From: Lepidodermella squamata
Lineage: Eukaryota; Animalia; Gastrotricha
Direction: 5' to 3'
Assembly: GCA_047495785.1 (NCBI GenBank)
Contig: JBLDXI010000017.1
Span: 2,480,001 to 2,544,000, forward strand
Length of the DNA: 64,000 bases
The notes beneath the pieces were generated by a model, which ran no database searches, was not told where the DNA came from, and was given only the letters and a program-made list of their open reading frames with translations. Below are positions 2,253 to 26,703 of this stretch, piece by piece. Positions within the stretch are counted from its first letter, which is position 1; each line of letters opens with the position of its first letter. Both the position numbers and the translations under genes were made by a program.

Positions 2253-3181
2253 TCATTTTTTATTTCCAGGATTAGCCGGTTTTCCCCTACCAACGCCTGC
2301 TCGGTTTGCAGCTGCCCTCGCCGTTTGAAAGGCTATTTGACTGATGCTATCGACCAAAGAGTGAATACTCGGCGCTGGTACGTCATCTGACACACTACTA
2401 GCAAGCGAGTCACTGCTAGCTGATGAGGTGGGAGTAGAAGCTTGCCGCTGTCCTTCCATACCATTTATCATCGCCAGAGACAGAGTCATGAAAAATTTGT
2501 CCCAGACAGCGGCAGATTGCTTTCGAGCAATCGATGCCATTTCCTCCTCACTTGAACTCTGCTCTTCGACAAGACCCGAAGTTGAACTCACCGAACCAGA
2601 TTTCCTGTGACATCCTTGATAGATGACAACCCATTTTGCGTCAGGAATCGTATCGTTGACGTCGTAGATGGCGCGGCGAAAGCAACTCATCAATGCCAAG
2701 ATGTGATTAGGCTTCGCACCGTTCGTGGCGTGCCTTGCCGAGAGAGGGGTGATGAACTCGAGAAAGGCCGTTTGATCGTCGATTCTATTGACGCATTTTT
2801 CTATGGCCGATAAAACTCGACGAGAGTGATTTTTCGTTTCCCAACTATAACGGACCTTAATTAGGTATGCTCGCAATAAAACCAAAATTAGACTCTGTAT
2901 GAATGTCTTACTTCCTCCTTAGTTTTCGGCATCACCTTTTGCTCGACAAAGACTTGAAAAGCATCCTTATGTGCGTCGAATAAACTTAGGGAAATGACGA
3001 ATGCAGCAAGTTTTTTTAATGTTTCTGTTCAAACATACCTGGTGAATGCCAAAACCCCAACAAGTTCCAACTCGGGGATCAAGAGCTCGAAACTTCGTCG
3101 CAGTAGGCCGCATTCCTGCGGGGAGTAGCTATCGAAAAACCAACCATGCTCGCGACGTTCTTTCGGTCTCTGTGCCGCCAT
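2253..3181 (-). CDS. Globin g1 (exons 3181-3039, 2984-2912, 2855-2253)
   Basis: Spliced translation MAAQ..GWFFDSYSPQE..LAFTS|LFDAHKDAFQVF..KEE|VRYSWETKNHSRRVL..SARH..AVWDKFF. CD1 Phe, E7 His and F8 His present; B12.2 intron. Confidence 0.85.
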
Positions 3182-3590: not shown

Positions 3591-4335
3591 TCATTTTTCG
3601 ATTGAGTTCCGGGGTGCCTCATCTTGTGGTAAAGCTTGATCGCAACTGCTTTCTTGTGAAACATTGTCCCTGGGGAAGTTTTTCGCCGCCTTTCCTCCGT
3701 TAAAGTTAATCATCAATAAAGACAGCGATGAGAAAAATTTGTCCCAGACGGCAAAGCATTTAGGCAGCAAATTCGTTTCGTCTGTCAGTTTTTTCGCATT
3801 GAGGCTTGCGAATTCTTCATATAGCGCCTGCCTCAGGCAGCTAACCAGAACTAGCACGTCACATGGATATTCGATGAATGGTTCGTGCCGAAGAGTTAGC
3901 CCTGCGACGTATTCCAAGAGGGCTGCTCTGTCGTCCAGCCGGTTGATGCACTTTTGCAAGCCACTCCAAACTTTCAGGCCGTGCTGCCTAGTCTCCCACG
4001 AATAAAGTACCTAGATCATTTTGTCCGGTTTATTAAATGAGGAATAATTGAGAATGTTATACTTCATCACGAGTCTTCGGCAGAACAGCGTTGGAAATGA
4101 AGACAGAAAAGGCATGGCTATGAGAGTCGAACAACCTGTTGGTTAGGAAAGTGAGAGCGGATCCACTTTCATTAAATTAAGGAGGATGATTATCGATATA
4201 CCGAGTAAAAGCCGCAACGCCAACGTCGGACAGGTTGTTCATGACCTCCTGAAAGCTCTGCCGAATAATGCCGATTTCTGCGCTAGAAAACTCAGCAAGG
4301 TACCAATGTTCATCGGCAGGCACTAGCGAGGTCAT
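3591..4335 (-). CDS. Globin g2 (exons 4335-4202, 4135-4063, 4010-3591)
   Basis: MTSLVPADEHWYLAEFS..AAFTR|LFDSHSHAFSVF..RDE|VLYSWETRQHG..LTLRH..AVWDKFF. Same two intron positions as g1. Confidence 0.85.
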
Positions 4336-14453: not shown

Positions 14454-15147
14454 TTACTGATATTGAAGCATTTCTGCGATGAAAGTCAGCCCGAAAGTGC
14501 GGAAGAACTTCTTCCAAACATAAGTCAGCTGACTGGCGGTCATATCGCTAGAAATCGCATCACAGTTGGATGCGTAGATGGCCATTTCGCTAATCAAAGC
14601 AGTGTTCATACATCCAAATAGCGCTAGAATATGCATCGGTTTGACTTTGAATCGGACGTGACTGGCCGCCAAATCGCGAACTACGTCAAGAAATCGTTCG
14701 CTTTTGTCCAAGCGATTGAGGCATCGTTCGAAAACGTGCATCACGCGCATGCCGAGGCGGTGAACTTCCCAACTGTAGCGAACATCCTCAGCTGTCTTCA
14801 CTGATACACTTTGCGGGACGAAAAGAGCAAAAGCATCAGGGTGCTCTTGAAATAAGCTGTAATACAGATAACACTGGTTGATGAATGATGAAATCAGCAG
14901 GGATTTACCTCGAAAACGCATTAATTGTGATACTCTCCAAGCGGTGTTGAATTGATACAAAACTTTTACGCAGTAAATTAATTTCTTGTGGGCTAAATGA
15001 GTCCGAGAACCACCAACCACCCGCGTTGATAGATTCGGCGATAATGCTAGCCGAGGCAGCGCTATTCTCGCTATCAGCTCGGCTAGATCGCCCGCATTCG
15101 AATTCGAATTCCGGTGACGTAGGAGGTGTAGCCTCGGAATTTCGCAT
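14454..15147 (-). CDS. Globin g3 (intron 14857-14908; alternative start at 15258)
   Basis: GGWWFSDSFSPQE..NAFSS|LFQEHPDAFALF..YSWEVHRLG..LAASH..VWKKFF; B12.2 intron. Confidence 0.85.
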
Positions 15148-15884: not shown

Positions 15885-17417
15885 ATGCATCGAAAAATAA
15901 CGGCAACTGCAGTCTATACCTTATTGGTGTGTTGGACCGCGAATGCGGGTTTGCTCCCCGGTCTCGATTCTGTAGCTAACAACGTGATCGGTGGAGTCAG
16001 CGACTTGACCAATACCATAGCAGGCAGCGTGACTGTGGATCCGCGGCTGCCAGGCGCGAATCTGTTCAATGGAGTAATCGGAGGGCTGCAGAACCTCACA
16101 AATGGAGTAATCGGCCTTGTGAACGATACTACAAATGGTCTCAATTCATTCATAAACGCTACTGCTTATGGCTTGACGGATGGGCTAATCAAGTTGGCTG
16201 ATGGTTCAAATCCAAAACCGTCCTTCACCGCAGCGGAATTGAACCAGCAATGCAATGGGATCTTCTCGGCAGACCGAAGATGCCCGGATTTGGTCAATGG
16301 CCAGTCAAATAAAATCGGCCTATCTCTCGTTGTTGGCTCGTTCGATTCTCTCGACGATAAGGAAGAGGTTCTTCAGGTTTCGGCTACTCTAGTCTTCAGT
16401 TGGGAAATAACTAACTGTGTCATGAAAAACTGGACTTTTCGGTATCGAAATCGAGCTAAAGAGCGCGTGATTGTCCCGGAAACCCACCCGATATGGCGAC
16501 CGAAGCTCACCCTTGTAAACTCAGCCGACGATCCTCAGTTGAAGAGCACAACGATAAGCGAATCTTTTGAGGTAATCTATCAACCCAACGGCCCATTGCC
16601 TCCGCCACTCCCTCCGTCCCCAGAGATGGTGTATCCTATTAGCCTCAAGTTTGTACTGATGCGTACGGGAGTTTTCAGGACTGACTGCACTTTGAACCTG
16701 AAATCTTTCCCCTTCGACACTCAAGTTTGCAGCCTGGTTTTCCAGCTGAATGAAATATCAGCATTCACTGTATTCGACAACTCGTCTACTCGAATCTATC
16801 TGCCAGATTCGTTTTCTGACAACGAAGAGTTAGTTCTGATCAGCAACAACACGGAGCTCGTTTCGCAGCAGCCACAGTTGATGAAAAAGCTACTGCAGCT
16901 GGAAAATTACGAGGTCAGCCAAGCTGTTTTCAGCTTCGGGTTCAAGCGTAGGCCCCAATACTACGTCGTCAACCTGGTTTGCCCGTGTTTTGTCCTTGCT
17001 GTACTGGAATTGGCCATTTTCTTGCTTTCGAATGAAACTGCTGAGAGAGCAACCTTTTCAGTCACAATCTTGCTAGCTTTCACCTTCATCCAGTCGGACT
17101 TTATCAAGGAACTGCCTCGAACTCCTCAGGGTGTTCTTATGGCCGATTACATCTTTGTTCTGACAATTTATACGGGAGTTTGTAAGTTTCGCAGCTTGAG
17201 TTGTTTGAATGAAGAATTAAACAATTTATCCTACAAAGGTACCCTGCAATCTATGATAATGTTCTGGCTGCAATCAGTGGTCTTCGCTGAATCCAAGCTA
17301 AGGGTTCAAATGTGTGGCAAGAAAATTCAGCCGATGATCATTCTGGATTTCATCTGCTTTCTGGCAGCTCTTGCAGGATTCGTTTGGATAAACAAGCAGT
17401 GGGTCACTGTGATATAG
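15885..17417 (+). CDS. Cys-loop pentameric ligand-gated ion channel subunit (nAChR/5-HT3-like, divergent); probable in-frame intron 17182-17238
   Basis: Signal peptide; loop A IWRPKLTLVN; Cys-loop CTLNLKSFPFDTQVC; M1 RRPQYYVVNLVCP; M2 ERATFSVTILLA; LP.T after M2; M3 and M4 present. Confidence 0.85.
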   Translation: MHRKITATAVYTLLVCWTANAGLLPGLDSVANNVIGGVSDLTNTIAGSVTVDPRLPGANLFNGVIGGLQNLTNGVIGLVNDTTNGLNSFINATAYGLTDGLIKLADGSNPKPSFTAAELNQQCNGIFSADRRCPDLVNGQSNKIGLSLVVGSFDSLDDKEEVLQVSATLVFSWEITNCVMKNWTFRYRNRAKERVIVPETHPIWRPKLTLVNSADDPQLKSTTISESFEVIYQPNGPLPPPLPPSPEMVYPISLKFVLMRTGVFRTDCTLNLKSFPFDTQVCSLVFQLNEISAFTVFDNSSTRIYLPDSFSDNEELVLISNNTELVSQQPQLMKKLLQLENYEVSQAVFSFGFKRRPQYYVVNLVCPCFVLAVLELAIFLLSNETAERATFSVTILLAFTFIQSDFIKELPRTPQGVLMADYIFVLTIYTGVCKFRSLSCLNEELNNLSYKGTLQSMIMFWLQSVVFAESKLRVQMCGKKIQPMIILDFICFLAALAGFVWINKQWVTVI

Positions 17418-17866: not shown

Positions 17867-18676
17867 ATGGCTCAAACCAGCCCGACGGATGAGCATGATT
17901 TGCAATCAAAAAGAGCACCCGGAAACGATATGGCTCCAGGCGATGATAAGAAAAACCCGGCAACTTGGTGGTACAGCTGTGACTTATCTTCGGACGAGCT
18001 CTTTATTCTACGCAGCAGCTACGGTGCCGTAAAACCGTATCTAGAAAACGTTGCAATTGCAGCATTCACCAATCTTTTCGATCAGCGACCCGATGCCTTC
18101 GCAGTTTTTGCCGGGAAAAAGGTCATTCCGAGTACGAGGAGCGACGTGGATTACTCGCGAAAGGTGAAGCAACACGGTTTGAGGGTTCTTAGTGTCATCG
18201 AGCGTGGTCTTGATCGAATCGATAATTGGGAGCTGTTCGAAGAGGTTGTTTCGAAAGCAGCTGCCCGCCATTTGCCATACGGCGCAAAGCCAATTCATAT
18301 TCTAGCATTATTTGGCTGTATACGCGAGGCTCTTTTGAAGGAGATTGAGATTGCCCGTGCTATTGAAGACAATGGGGAACGAAATGGACTGCCATCATTG
18401 AATTTCCCGTTCGATACTAATCATTACAAACTGGGCGTCTCTGCCATCAATTCTGCGTGGAATAAATTCTTCAGAACGTTTGGTCTAGCTCTCATCGCCG
18501 AAATGTTGTCCATGCAGGATAAAATGTCCCAAATCGATGCTGGCGAGAAGGATCAGCACATTCAAAAGCGAGTATCCCTTCAGCCCGAAGGTATGCTACA
18601 TAATACCGAGGACAAATCGAACGGCAATGTTGGCGTGGTCAAAGCTATGACTGCGCGGTTCAGCCAAGGGCATTGA
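17867..18676 (+). CDS. Globin g4 (intronless)
   Basis: TWWY..AAFTNLFDQRPDAFAVF..VKQHGLRV..AARHLPYGAKP..AWNKFF. Confidence 0.9.
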   Translation: MAQTSPTDEHDLQSKRAPGNDMAPGDDKKNPATWWYSCDLSSDELFILRSSYGAVKPYLENVAIAAFTNLFDQRPDAFAVFAGKKVIPSTRSDVDYSRKVKQHGLRVLSVIERGLDRIDNWELFEEVVSKAAARHLPYGAKPIHILALFGCIREALLKEIEIARAIEDNGERNGLPSLNFPFDTNHYKLGVSAINSAWNKFFRTFGLALIAEMLSMQDKMSQIDAGEKDQHIQKRVSLQPEGMLHNTEDKSNGNVGVVKAMTARFSQGH

Positions 18677-20282: not shown

Positions 20283-21152
20283 ATGTCGCAAGATACCGCG
20301 GCACATCCTGCTTCGACGGCTGAAGATGGTATTTTGTTGAATGGTCACCGATTATCTCAAGGATCTGAATCGAAGACGGCTAGTTCTGGTAAAAATCCCC
20401 AGGCCGCGTGGTGGTTCGTGTGTGACTTCTCCGCCGACGAACTCTCCATTCTTCGCAGCAGCTTTACGGCTGTTAAACACCGCTTGGAAAACGTAGCCGT
20501 CGCTGCTTTCACGAGCCTGTTCGATGAGCGCCCAGATGCATTTGCTGTATTCGTCGGGAAGAAAGTCCTACCCAGCAGCCGCAACGACGTAGCTTACTCT
20601 TGGGAGACGAAGCAGCACGGTCTCCGCGTTCTCAGCATCGTCGAAAAGTGCCTAAATCGAATCGACAAATGGGAGCAATTCGAGGATGTAGTCTCAAGCC
20701 TTGCAAAGCGGCATTTGAATTACGGCGCCAAGCCAGTTTACATTCTTGCATTATTCGGCTGCCTTCGTGAGGCCTTGCTGAAAGAGATGGAGATTAGCCG
20801 AAGTCAATGTTCGACTCCAACTGAGCCGGCTCCTTTTCCTAGCAACGGTAACCCGTTTCAGCTCAGCTTGTCACCGATAAACTCGGCATGGAGCAAGTTT
20901 TTTCGAACCCTAGGTTTAGCGTTGATTGCCGAGATGCTGTCGTTGCAAGAAAGCGGAAAGTTGACTGAAATCTACCAAAGCCCTGAGAAAAATCATGGCA
21001 GCGAGTCGTCATTGAGGAGCGATATTGACTCGCCAGTTGCAGCGAATTCCCCCAAAATCAAAGATGGTGCCAAATCGAAAAAATCTAACGAGACTAACAA
21101 CATTATAAGAGCTGTAACATCCAAATTTAATTTGAACTTGGGGAATTCCTAA
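20283..21152 (+). CDS. Globin g5 (intronless)
   Basis: AWWF..AAFTSLFDERPDAFAVF..YSWETKQHGLRV..LAKRHLNYGAKP..AWSKFF. Confidence 0.9.
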   Translation: MSQDTAAHPASTAEDGILLNGHRLSQGSESKTASSGKNPQAAWWFVCDFSADELSILRSSFTAVKHRLENVAVAAFTSLFDERPDAFAVFVGKKVLPSSRNDVAYSWETKQHGLRVLSIVEKCLNRIDKWEQFEDVVSSLAKRHLNYGAKPVYILALFGCLREALLKEMEISRSQCSTPTEPAPFPSNGNPFQLSLSPINSAWSKFFRTLGLALIAEMLSLQESGKLTEIYQSPEKNHGSESSLRSDIDSPVAANSPKIKDGAKSKKSNETNNIIRAVTSKFNLNLGNS

Positions 21153-21941: not shown

Positions 21942-22849
21942 ATGACCTCGCCGGAAACATCAAGCCATCATCAGCGGGCCTGGTGGTTTATTTGCGATTT
22001 CTCCGCAGTCGAGCTTGCTATCCTCCGTAGCAGCTTTATAGCAGTGAAAAATCGGCTGGAGAGCGTTGCGATTGCGGCGTTTACCGAGTAAAAATTATTC
22101 TAAAACGTACTTCAATTTCAATTTCTGGAAAATTTAGCCTGTTTGACGTCCGACCTGACGCCTTCGCTGTATTCGTAGGTGCTAAGGTTCGGCTTATAAT
22201 ATAATTTATTTGGCCGATTTAACAATTTTCAACGCTAGGTTCTACCGAGTACTCGAGACGAAGTTAGGTACTCGTGGGAAACTAGACAGGTAAAACCCGC
22301 TTAATTATTCGAATTAGTTTCTCATCGATTTGCTTCAACGTTAAAAGCACGGTCTTCGAGTGTTGAGTATTGTCGAGAGGTGCCTCAATCGCATTGACAA
22401 ATATGAGCTGTTCCAAGACGTTGTCTCCGGCCTGGCCGCTCGACATTTATCCTACGGCGCAAAGCCGGTTTATCTTCTGGTAAATTTCACAAAGTTGAAT
22501 TTTTTCATTTTATATTTACTTTACTTCCAAAAAGTCTCTGTTTGGTTGTTTAAGGGAAGCGCTGCTGAAAGAAATGTCATCGCCAGATGAAAAAATGTCG
22601 AGTGAATACAGCGCTAATGATATTGCTGTCGCTTGGAATAAATTTTTCCGAACTCTCGGCCTCGCTTTCGTTGCTCAAATGCTTGACCTGGAAGAATCTA
22701 TAGCAGTCAAATTGCAGCAGAGCAACAAATCGGAGGATTCACCATCTAGGAACTCGCCGTCCGAACTGCGAAATAGGCCACTTCACCGGAACAACTCCAC
22801 GCGGAGTACTCGCAGCGATCGTGGCCAGGCAGCGGGGGCGAGGCAATGA
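21942..22849 (+). CDS. Globin g6 (introns 22088-22137, 22187-22238, 22290-22347, 22480-22534)
   Basis: Spliced product closely matches g5: AWWFICDFS..AAFTD|LFDVRPDAFAVFVGAK|VLPSTRDEVRYSWETRQ|HGLRV..LAARHLSYGAKPVYLL|SLFGCLREA. Confidence 0.9.
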
Positions 22850-23410
22850 GGCGGAGAATTGTTGTCTTGAAATCTCTGGCTACCTTTCAACTAATTCGAA
22901 TCTGTCAGTGTTAATTACCGATGAAACTCCAAGTCCGTGTTAAATTATATTACATACACAATATCCGGCAATTAAAATGTTACGCAGTCATCTGCACTCA
23001 GATACCTTTTATTATTAGAGAAAAATTCAAGTCATCAACATTATTACTGAATATAAAAACGGTTTCCTCGATGCGACCAATGTCTTTTTTATTCAAAAGC
23101 ATTGCTTTGTCCAAAAATCAAAATTCAATTAAACACGCTTTCACAAAATATACCTACATCAGGAAATTTTAGACTCCCTAAAATGCCCCGAAATCATTTA
23201 TCGAGTATAGTCGAGAATTCCAAATTCCAACATCCCAGCGGTATAATGTATAATTTATGCTAGTATTTGTGCTCGTTGATCATGAATAATCCCAAGAAGT
23301 GGAAAAATAGCCATCTTACGGGGAGTAATAGTCCCAGAAGCGAACACAATATCAAACAGTTTTAGGAATTTGGTGAAATTTTCAAAGTTTTCAGAAGTTG
23401 AACATAGTGG

Positions 23411-24179
23411 CTACTTCGACCCTGTTTCGCGCGAAGGTGATAGATCAGATATAAGACTAGATTTCGGGTCGTCACTTTCAAGAATCGACGCGCTCGATGG
23501 AACAGTAGGGCATCCATTAGCAACATTTTTTATCCAACGATTCGGCAAAACTTGGATCTGTTTTTTATCCGAACCGCACACTCGCAGGATATCGGCTACG
23601 AATGCCAATCCAAGGATTCGAAAAAACTTGGCCCATACTTCAGTAAAAGTTATCGCATTTGCTTGGGAACAGAATTTTGCAGCAAATGCAGTCTTGAAAC
23701 AGCCCAGCAAAGACTATATTATCATAAATCATAAATAGGAATTTAACTAGAGTTATGAGGCAATCAGGTAGTATTACCAATATGTCCAATGGCTTCACAC
23801 CGTATCGAACGTGAGTTAAAGCTGTTGTGCGAACAATTTCAGCAAATTCAGGTTTCCCCAGCCGGCTGAGACATCTCTCGAAGGCATGTAACACGTGAGT
23901 GCCGTGACGGCGGGTCTCCCATGAATAAGCAACTTCATCTCGCGTCGTCGGCAGGGTGTGATTGCTCGTGAAAACGGCAAATGAATTAGGATGAAGATCG
24001 AAAAGTTGCGTAAATGATGCGACAATTATTTCATCACTGCTGAGTTTAATTATCTCGAAGCTGCTGGTGAGTAGTGCCATCTCGGTCTGACTTACATCTT
24101 CGCAAAGCAGCCACCAATCGTCAAGGTCACTTCTGCGGCTATTACAGCTCAAATCGGCGGAACTCTGTGCTGTTTCCAT
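23411..24179 (-). CDS. Globin g7 (intron 23714-23777, G7.0)
   Basis: DWWLL..ASFTQLFDLHPNSFAVF..YSWETRRHG..ALTHVRYGVKPLDIL|SLLGCFK..VWAKFF. Confidence 0.85.
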
Positions 24180-24646
24180 CGCGTCGACACTTTGATCACT
24201 TGTTAATAATATCTTACTTCGCACTGCGGAAACGGTTAAATATTATCATCAAATTAACTGCTATTAGCCAGTAAAGGTCGACGAAAATTAAGTATATAAA
24301 ATGTCACTGACATCTATTATAATGCTCAGTCTGAGCCTTATTTATATAGGAATCTTTCAGCCTTTTCAAGCCTTATTAGCTAATTTTTTGAACTATAATA
24401 AGTCAGTTCGCCCTTTAACATGCCTCAATCGAAGTTGATCGCTGTGAATCACACCGACGAGAGTGCGAGGGCGGAAGTAAAAGATCGATTAAGGTGGTTG
24501 CTGAGCCGGTCATTTTTGTCAGCAATTAAGCTACCTTGCGACTGTTTGCGCGAAGCCAATCAGGTTTGGCGTATAATACCGCAGCGGTGTATATTGACTA
24601 GATCCATAAATCATAGCTTCGAAATCAAATATTTTCAAGAAGTATT

Positions 24647-25209
24647 TTATTTTAGGGCTTGTTCACATTCCATTTCAGTTATAACAGCCAAAGCCAGCAT
24701 ATTAAAGAATTTTCCCCACTCAGGCGAACTGATTTGCTGAGAATCAAGTCTCGCCGCAATTTCATTCTTGGTGCAGCCGACCAGGTCGAGCACGTGGCGA
24801 GCTCGAACCTTATGCGTCAAGAAATCGGTCGCCAACTCGCGCGAAACGCTTACAAAAGCGTCGCAATGGTGGATTCGGCTGAGCAGCCTTTCGACCGAAT
24901 GCAGCATTTGCTGGCCAACGCGCTGAACCTCCCAACTATAAGCCACGTCGTCGCTCGATGGCGTCAAGTGTGGCGTCTTGACAATGGCCGAATAGGAGTT
25001 TGGGTTCCGGTTCAGTAACCTAAAATTGATAATCATTTTCTGAAGTCTCAAGCTTAATAATTCTTTGATAAAAAATACCTGACAAATATTGAAGTTACCA
25101 AGGGCTGAAAGTACATTTTCAGGCTTCCAAAAGACTGCCGCAGGGATGTCACTTCATCAGGCGTGAAGTCAATGAAAAACCAGTAGTCACGGTCACAATT
25201 ATTAGCCAT
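24647..25209 (-). CDS. Globin-fold protein g8 lacking haem-ligand residues (intron 25020-25078, B12.2)
   Basis: MANNCDRDYWFFIDFTPDE..SIFVR|LLNRNPNSYSAIV..VAYSWEVQRVG..LATDFLTHKV..EWGKFF. ORF intact and colinear with g1-g9. Confidence 0.75.
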
Positions 25210-25736
25210 TTGAAATCTCCAGAACTGCAAATAAAATTCTCTGCGAGTAATACGAACAAAAATTGAAAATATGTTTTTCGAGCCGCCGATATTAGTCCCT
25301 GATTAGTAGCATATTGTCGTCATTTTATATCCTCTCCTCGATGCCGAACTCGTTATAGGCCGATTTGCGCTGCAAATTAAATCAGCTCACAATTAAACGC
25401 ACGCTTTGTCATCCACCGGCTTTATATCGATTTTCCATTACTAAATAGCAGACAGCAGACTAAAAAGTAAGATCATCGAATTTTGCTTTCCCTATTTTGC
25501 TGCGCATTAGACGGAACTTACATGAAAATTATGTGACCTGGGATCAAGCTTATCCGCGGCGAAGCCTAGGCAATATAGATATAAATTTTGAACAAAAAAT
25601 CACGAACCAAATTTAAACAAAAAAGACAATTTTTTACTCATTTAAAAGACAAATTCTATCTAAAAATCAATTAGATCAAGGTAATACTCTCAAGTTCCGA
25701 GTTACTATAAGAATTCCCAACCAGCGAGAATAAAAT

Positions 25737-26703
25737 CTAATGCAGAGTCATCCGACGCAAATGTTCAAGTGACGGTAGAGCAGCTAGTGACATATGACGT
25801 CCGGAATCGTTTGAACCCTTTCTTTCGCTCGATGTTTCGCAATTCGAATATCGATGATTTAGCTGTGCCTTTTGCACATTGGGTGATTCCGCCGCGCTTG
25901 AACTCGAGCTATTCGACCCCAAAGCAGACATAGTAGCTATAAGGCCAAGAGAAAGGGCGGCATAGAATTTATTCCAAGCATTCGCGCAAGCAATTTTAAC
26001 TGCAGCATCATCCGACGTTTTGCTGCCATTTTCATCTCCGTTCGTCTGAGGTAGGGCTTGATGCCGATCTGACCACTGAGCTTCAATTTGCTTCCAGGTT
26101 GCTTCTCTCAAGCAACCAATAAGAGCCTTGAACAGGAAAATAACCCTAAAATGCGTGCTTTAATATTAGGCCATTCTTACCAAAATATGGCTGCAATTGG
26201 CACCATAATTCACATGTCGCGCTCCGAGTTCTTCCACAAAATTCCTATAGGCTTCAGCGTCTTTGATGCGGTTCAACGCCCTGATGAGAAAGATCGTTTT
26301 ACATGAAAAAAAAAGTGGTAAATATTAAAGCAAACTTTTCAATGGAGTGAAAAACTCGTAGACTATGCTGCTTGGTCTCCCACGAGTAGTAAACCTCGTT
26401 TCTAGTTTCCGGCAGGACACTTTTTCCGATGAAGACCTTGAATACATCCGGGTACTCGTCGAACAGCCTTTAAAATTTTAAAAGGAAAGATTGCAAGGAA
26501 AAATGATGAATTCGTCAATTTTACTTGGTGAATGCAGTTGTTCCAACGGTGCTGAGATGCGGTTTAATTAGGGCGAAGGAGTAGCGAAGTAATTTCACAT
26601 CCGCATCCGTGTAGTAACTGGTTCCACAAAACCACCAGCAAACGCTATCCTTCTTCGCATCTGGAGTCGCGTTTTCCGGGGCACATGCGATTTTTTCAGT
26701 CAT
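25737..26703 (-). CDS. Globin g9 (introns 26468-26524, 26281-26335, 26126-26180)
   Basis: CWWF..TAFTK|LFDEYPDVFKVF..YSWETKQHSLRVFHSIEK|ALNRI..LGARHVNYGANCSHIL|ALIGCLRE..AWNKFY. Confidence 0.85.

Follow-up and report, generated by a model that had tools for sequence, protein, structure and literature searches.

The window analysed here is a stretch of 64,000 nucleotides from the gastrotrich Lepidodermella squamata (contig 17 of a 121-Mb assembly, positions 2,480,001-2,544,000), and it harbours an array of nine globin genes, designated g1 to g9 in order of position. The eighth is the candidate with which this report is concerned.

g1: 2256-3181, minus strand, globin
g2: 3594-4335, minus strand, globin
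g3: 14457-15147, minus strand, globin, nearest paralog of g8
g4: 17867-18673, plus strand, globin, intronless
g5: 20283-21149, plus strand, globin, intronless
g6: 21942-22846, plus strand, globin with four introns
g7: 23414-24179, minus strand, downstream neighbour of g8, canonical at E7, F8 and CD1, without the B12.2 intron
g8 (candidate): 24647..25209 including the stop codon, minus strand, two exons, 167 codons
g9: 25737-26703, minus strand, upstream neighbour of g8, canonical globin with four exons

Gene model of g8 and the introns of the array

On the minus strand, g8 runs from an ATG at 25209 to a TAA codon that is read directly off the sequence and overlaps an AATAAA hexamer (24646..24651). 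The gene can be partitioned as follows.

Exon 1: 25079..25209, minus strand, from Met1 through the second base of codon 44
Intron: 25020..25078, minus strand, 59 nt, GT..AG, phase 2, splitting the codon of Arg44
Exon 2: 24650..25019, minus strand, from the last base of codon 44 to Lys167, helices B13 to H
Stop codon TAA: 24647..24649, minus strand

Exon 1 encodes a short N-terminus, helix A, and helix B as far as B12, with Phe42 retained at B10. The splice junction was chosen by testing all in-frame GT..AG pairs, of which a single one reproduces the B-helix pattern of the family. It places the intron at B12.2, in the codon two residues past the B10 Phe, which is a canonical position for globin introns, and an intron of the same place and phase is found in g1, g2, g3, g6, and g9. 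The original prediction of an intact globin reading frame between 24647 and 25209 is therefore upheld by a minus-strand, two-exon model with an open frame and a B12.2 intron. The joined two-exon protein was used for alignment, counting, and tree building, while searches and structure prediction took single exons.

The intron content of the paralogs varies widely, from none in g4 and g5 to four in g6, with B12.2 absent from g7, and the g6 ortholog of a distant relative (L033, 1900-2343) reads as a single open frame spanning helices A to G. The family has thus gained or lost introns recently.

Fold and haem pocket

The exon 2 product of g8 was aligned to the matching parts of its paralogs, and the nine full models were aligned as well; the alignment is gap-free from helix A to mid-helix G. 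Aligning a profile of the family with myoglobin and cytoglobin fixed the columns that correspond to CD1 Phe, E7 His, and F8 His. Read against these columns, the haem site of g8 has the following residues.

F8: Phe110, codon TTC, 24821..24823, minus strand; proximal His in all relatives examined
E7: Val78, codon GTT, 24917..24919, minus strand; distal His in seven of the eight other paralogs, Leu in g3
CD1: Ile56, 24983..24985, minus strand; Phe in all eight other window paralogs
E10 and E11: Gln81 and Met82, 24905..24910, minus strand; in all eight others a basic residue and Val, respectively
F7: Asp109, 24824..24826, minus strand; Arg in six other paralogs, Ser or Thr in two
F8+3, FG corner: His113, 24812..24814, minus strand; candidate alternative ligand

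Three replacements had been proposed for g8, namely His to Phe at F8, His to Val at E7, and Phe to Ile at CD1, and all three are borne out by the gap-free alignments and the profile anchored on myoglobin and cytoglobin, so that none of the three canonical residues of this triad is left. The proximal His is present in every other family member that was examined, comprising the eight window paralogs, six other loci of the genome, and six genes of a relative, and a return from the TTC codon of Phe110 to a His codon needs two base changes. L029, a related locus at another place on the contig, has Leu at CD1. An apolar residue at E7 is, by itself, known from working globins.

The replacements extend beyond the triad. 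The Phe of the eight other paralogs gives way to Leu at B14 and to Tyr at C5, and the changes at B14, E10, E11, and F7, which include both basic propionate anchors, are found in g8 alone among the window paralogs. All of the cavity replacements are apolar. At the same time, the features that had been listed as preserved, namely the Trp-Phe-Phe pre-A motif, YSWE, the G-helix Cys, W-x-K-F-F, and the B12.2 intron, are all present in the nine-model alignment. With the iron ligand, the CD1 wedge, and the propionate anchors gone and an acidic residue at F7, g8 would not be expected to hold haem in the normal manner, and probably does not hold it at all.

Some of the other paralogs depart from the family pattern in ways of their own. 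The E7 residue of g3 is Leu, with a His two residues earlier at E5, while its F8 His and CD1 Phe are retained; g3 may reflect an intermediate stage, with an apolar pocket, on the way to g8. In g9, Cys stands in place of the G-helix Pro found in seven of the eight other paralogs, and g2 carries an unusual acidic and aromatic stretch following F8. A zinc-type clasp of Cys and His residues was also considered for g8 and rejected, the protein having no C-x-x-C motif and the shortest GH loop in the array.

The extent of pocket remodelling was assessed by counting unique states, that is, residues of g8 seen in no other window paralog, per alignment column. Over the B-to-F pocket positions, whose alignment is unambiguous, 9 of 12 states are unique in g8, compared with 51 of 138 elsewhere in the protein (Fisher p = 0.012, g8 alone), and the other eight paralogs, treated likewise and pooled, give 11 of 96 compared with 224 of 1104. 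When the 18 canonical pocket positions are taken, the g8 counts are 10 of 18 and 50 of 132, a difference that is not significant for g8 alone (Fisher p = 0.12). The pooled counts of the other eight over these positions are 19 of 144 and 216 of 1056, which makes the pocket the slower-evolving part of those proteins, and, given this pooled pattern, at least 10 unique states out of 18 in g8 has P = 0.008. Helix G can be placed only to within one residue (with the second intron of the family taken as the canonical G7.0 intron, the conserved Cys falls at G11, as originally stated), and the count was therefore repeated with the alternative register (P = 0.004) and with the B-to-F positions only (P = 0.0002). 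The g8 pocket is thus specifically remodelled, beyond chance.

The fold that surrounds this pocket appears to be conventional. The AlphaFold2 model of exon 2 has a mean pLDDT of 89.9 and a pTM of 0.81, with helices C to H in the expected order; it was built on an alignment of haem-binding paralogs, omits helices A and B, and does not allow the cavity to be read as open or filled. Helix F of the model ends at exon 2 residue 68, one before His113. Foldseek superposes the model on cytoglobin and clam nerve globin with TM scores of 0.79-0.83. In an exhaustive structure comparison haem globins take all of the top 30 places (Z 9.3-12.2 over 105-120 residues), among them Spisula nerve globin (Z 12.2, 118 residues) and cytoglobin (Z 11.5), and the non-haem RsbR domain ranks 31st-32nd (Z 9.0-9.1). 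The clusters nearest to g8 in a protein language-model search are likewise all globins. The Pfam Globin profile (PF00042), searched with each exon separately, gives no match to g8 even at E up to 10; the same profile scores g3, g4, and g5 at about 36 bits and g7 at 25 bits. On homology, predicted fold, and the B12.2 intron, g8 can nonetheless be assigned to the 3-on-3 globins. It lacks the proximal His at F8, the Phe at CD1, and the His- or Gln-type E7 by which haem globins are recognized, and it combines the predicted globin fold with a residue at F8 that does not ligate iron, as is characteristic of non-haem globin folds.

An alternative that retains the cofactor must be weighed against this pattern. 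In such a scenario g8 would bind haem through a non-canonical ligand, either His113, brought into play if helix F shifts or runs longer, or some other His or Cys in the protein, and would have an unusual coordination, for instance five-coordinate with an apolar distal side. The His three residues past F8 is indeed there, as originally pointed out, and would lie on roughly the same helical face were helix F to run on; moreover, the Pro with which helix G starts in seven of the eight other paralogs is Ala in g8 (G1), a replacement that could let helix F extend. The predicted helix F, however, stops one residue short of His113. g8 also keeps B10 Phe, F4 Leu, and the contacts in helix G, its cavity is still apolar, and the five His and four Cys residues that the protein still holds could serve as unusual ligands, but a haem shifted toward His113 would still need the contacts at CD1, B14, and E11, all of which are replaced. 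The propionate anchors are gone as well, with Gln at E10 and, next to the propionate site, an acidic Asp at F7. Nor would unique states at 9 of the 12 B-to-F pocket positions be expected had haem been kept. The replacement of most haem contacts and of both propionate-anchoring basic residues disfavours the His113 register shift, and we regard haem binding by a non-canonical ligand as unlikely.

Transcription, constraint, and relatives of g8

Evidence of transcription comes from a public sequencing run of 2015 (X1), which is assigned to RNA by software guess and is cDNA-like by virtue of GT..AG joints at one g6 intron and at all three g9 introns. Contigs of this run cover g8 at 24642..24910, and read depth reaches to about 25150, with zero depth on either side of the gene (23136-24638 and 25307-25640). 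Depth falls from 11.6-13.5 on exon 2 to 8 in the intron-containing bin, a decrease of the kind that exon-only coverage would give and that is indirectly consistent with intron removal; no spliced joint for the g8 intron itself is listed among the joints of X1. As regards expression, then, the exons of g8 are covered by a cDNA-like run that falls to zero depth in its flanks.

Two further observations were made in the same run. The neighbouring g7 has zero depth while the genes around it are covered, so that it is either not expressed in that sample or expressed at a very low level. Four joints labelled as lying on opposite strands (22964/23060, 24910/25021, 25898/26007, and 26619/26718) fall within 5 kb, each a fold-back of about 100 bases. 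A search for an inverted repeat behind the 24910/25021 joint in g8 found none of note, and since g8 holds no matching repeat, these joints are probably artefacts of the library or the assembly.

g8 is a single-copy gene. A genome search gives g3 as its best paralog, with an identity of only about 32%, and the match of exon 2 to g3 has an E-value of 2.5e-13 genome-wide and of 5e-19 when the window is searched. Maximum-likelihood trees place g8 as the weakly supported sister of g3, at the end of a branch of 2.9-3.1 changes per site, compared with 0.56-0.78 for g3, which is about four to five times longer and the longest in the family. Only 23 of the 41 columns conserved in the other paralogs are kept in g8; among the 21 columns invariant in the other eight it retains 15, the fold-building ones included.

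Such divergence invites the reading that g8 is a decaying or unconstrained copy, still transcribed, whose function was lost with the haem site and whose frame is not yet broken. Its long branch and eroded conserved columns, the failure of Pfam to recognize it, and the lack of a counterpart at the syntenic place of a distant relative (see below) would all fit this account. Against it stands the state of the reading frame. The nucleotide distance between g8 and g3 is 0.54, and when neutral drift was simulated from a g3 segment of equal length, the frame stayed open in 5.5e-4 of 20,000 trials, a simulation that counts substitutions only and in which indels would lower the chance further; the 167-codon frame of g8 is nevertheless open. 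The core alignment is free of gaps, and splice sites and intron phase are retained. Differences from g3 are least frequent at second codon positions (0.409, compared with 0.545 at first and 0.662 at third positions), with pN 0.476 and a saturated pS of 0.765. The fold-building residues are kept and the fold is predicted with confidence, and the cDNA-like run covers g8 but not its canonical neighbour g7. Decay of this kind therefore seems rather improbable.

A young pseudogene, which the original prediction had named as the outcome that would overturn it, was rejected on the remoteness of the nearest paralog, on a frame left open at drift odds of about 5e-4, and on the lower divergence of second codon positions. 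Exon 2 has two variants (24830 and 24833), both synonymous, that X1 shares with a second run (X2), which is DNA-like and about 1.5% diverged. The best-supported reading is that g8 is a fast-evolving yet maintained gene, kept by selection.

The history of g8 can be traced in part through more distant sequences. An exhaustive phmmer search against 1.84 billion representatives returned two proteins, of which P0001 is a true relative and P0002 a spurious repeat protein. JGI metagenome contigs, scanned with a single protein and with a three-row alignment, yielded no relative. A word-based search with exon 2 failed to recover even g8, and with a 15-row family alignment it gave no match at E<=0.01 although relatives exist in the material searched; its outcome seems to reflect a limit of the search as opposed to an absence. 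The contigs of the distant relative were reached via two ENA metagenome proteins, P0001 and P0003. P0001 was considered as a g8 ortholog and rejected: the three globins on its contig all have His at F8, and its place in the tree is not settled. These three genes lie within 3 kb (L007, 7812-10624) and adjoin genes for C-type lectin and Sushi-domain proteins.

Another contig of the relative (L035, 12.7 kb) carries, in order, a bZIP gene, a ligand-gated channel gene, g5-like, g6-like, and g9-like globins, and then genes for Pelota, SGT1, and a CCT subunit. Its g6-like globin is 82% identical to g6, and its g9-like globin 53% identical to g9; in trees, g6 and g9 pair with these counterparts with good support and at branch lengths of 0.2 and 0.5. 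The window likewise contains, between g3 and g4, a ligand-gated ion channel-like gene (16011-17207, plus strand), which is 39% identical to 10192-11511 of L035, and the match between the channel genes makes the two globin blocks syntenic. Between the adjacent g6-like and g9-like genes of L035 there is no counterpart of g7 or g8, and no g3 lies beside its channel gene. From this arrangement, g7 and g8 were either gained in the lineage studied here or lost in that of the relative. The placement of g8 in trees that include the relative's genes is not settled within a supported clade with g3-g7. In either case, the change in g8 since the two lineages split is 5 to 14 times that of its neighbours. 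No g8 ortholog was found in the phmmer search, the JGI contig scans, or the contigs of the distant relative.

Haem-free globin folds and the place of g8

Globins are a textbook fold that is defined by its cofactor. Haem-free proteins of the globin fold are established in bacteria and algae; among animals, to our knowledge, only a few sequences hint at globins of this kind and none has been characterized. Weighing the evidence above, we consider g8 to be, more probably than not, a real, transcribed gene under selection that encodes a 167-residue globin fold devoid of the canonical haem site and most likely free of haem. The claim that g8 is a maintained non-haem globin accordingly stands in two unequal parts: that the gene is intact, kept, and without a canonical site is carried by the open frame, the splice site, the codon signature, the predicted fold, and the cDNA-like coverage, while the loss of haem is what we infer from the sequence itself. 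The protein is apparently cytosolic. The roles originally suggested for it, as a scaffold, a regulator, or a hetero-oligomer partner, gain no specific support from these results and are speculative.

A scheme that would unite these features begins with the haem globins of the local array, from which g8 has descended while keeping the residues that build the fold. The iron ligand, the distal His, the CD1 wedge, B14, E11, and both propionate anchors have been replaced in the process, with an acidic residue installed at F7, and the old pocket would now be filled by apolar side chains or persist as a small hydrophobic cavity. The protein may then act through its fold as opposed to iron chemistry, binding an apolar small molecule or another protein, and its very long branch would fit a release from the constraints of haem followed by retention for a new role. 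That g8 is a working haem-free animal globin, its pocket rebuilt and the gene kept as a binder of small ligands or as a partner of its haem-bearing paralogs, is an attractive but tentative proposal, to which we would give somewhat less than even weight.

There are precedents for several of these features. Crustacean globins with a substituted F8, including one in which all three sites are changed, are on record (PMC7457136). The latter, HbL2 of the ostracod Puriana, has Met at CD1, Val at E7, and Val at F8 as well as a deviant position in trees, and its authors suggest an alternative function (PMC7457136). g8 is likewise apolar at each of CD1, E7, and F8, and falls into the same type, in which all three key residues are replaced in an intact gene, a class that is descriptive and denotes no clade. 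The two differ in phylum and are of independent origin, and both are known from sequence alone, that of HbL2 being a transcript; g8 adds the genomic context, the intron, the paralog array, the acceleration in rate, and a wider remodelling of the pocket. Daphnia pulex provides another parallel in its monodomain HbL globins, some of which carry Tyr or Val at F8 (PMC7457136) and in which the proximal His has been lost from intact genes in a tandemly expanded invertebrate family. For these, the F8 change is what has been reported, whereas loss of the full triad and of the propionate anchors is not described.

Outside the animals, non-haem globin folds such as the N-terminal domain of RsbR and the sporulation sensor domains of Bacillus anthracis serve in sensing or bind apolar ligands (PMC7475203, PMC8717448). 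Their likeness to g8, a globin fold without haem, is one of functional analogy only; the bacterial domains share no close descent with g8, which is a recent offshoot of animal haem globins. By this analogy, the role of g8 would rest on the fold, as it does in those domains. The closest comparison is within the array itself, with g3, which has the same intron, the same fold motifs, Val at E4, and an apolar E7 (Leu, where g8 has Val). g3 differs in keeping F8 His, CD1 Phe, E10 Arg, and E11 Val, in its recognition by Pfam Globin at 36 bits, and in a branch that is four to five times shorter.

A "pseudo-globin" of this type thus has animal precedents, and g8 joins a rare kind, documented in more depth than those already on record. 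As a finding at the level of sequence, with precedents, it carries moderate weight. It offers a clean candidate for testing, being short, having substitutions beyond the classic triad, and having in its sister g3, about 10 kb away, a haem-keeping control. Coordination of haem by His113 or a Cys, should g8 prove capable of it, would be a new mode for a 3-on-3 globin; if the protein turns out to function without haem, it would illustrate how a fold that depends on a cofactor can be re-used once the cofactor is gone.
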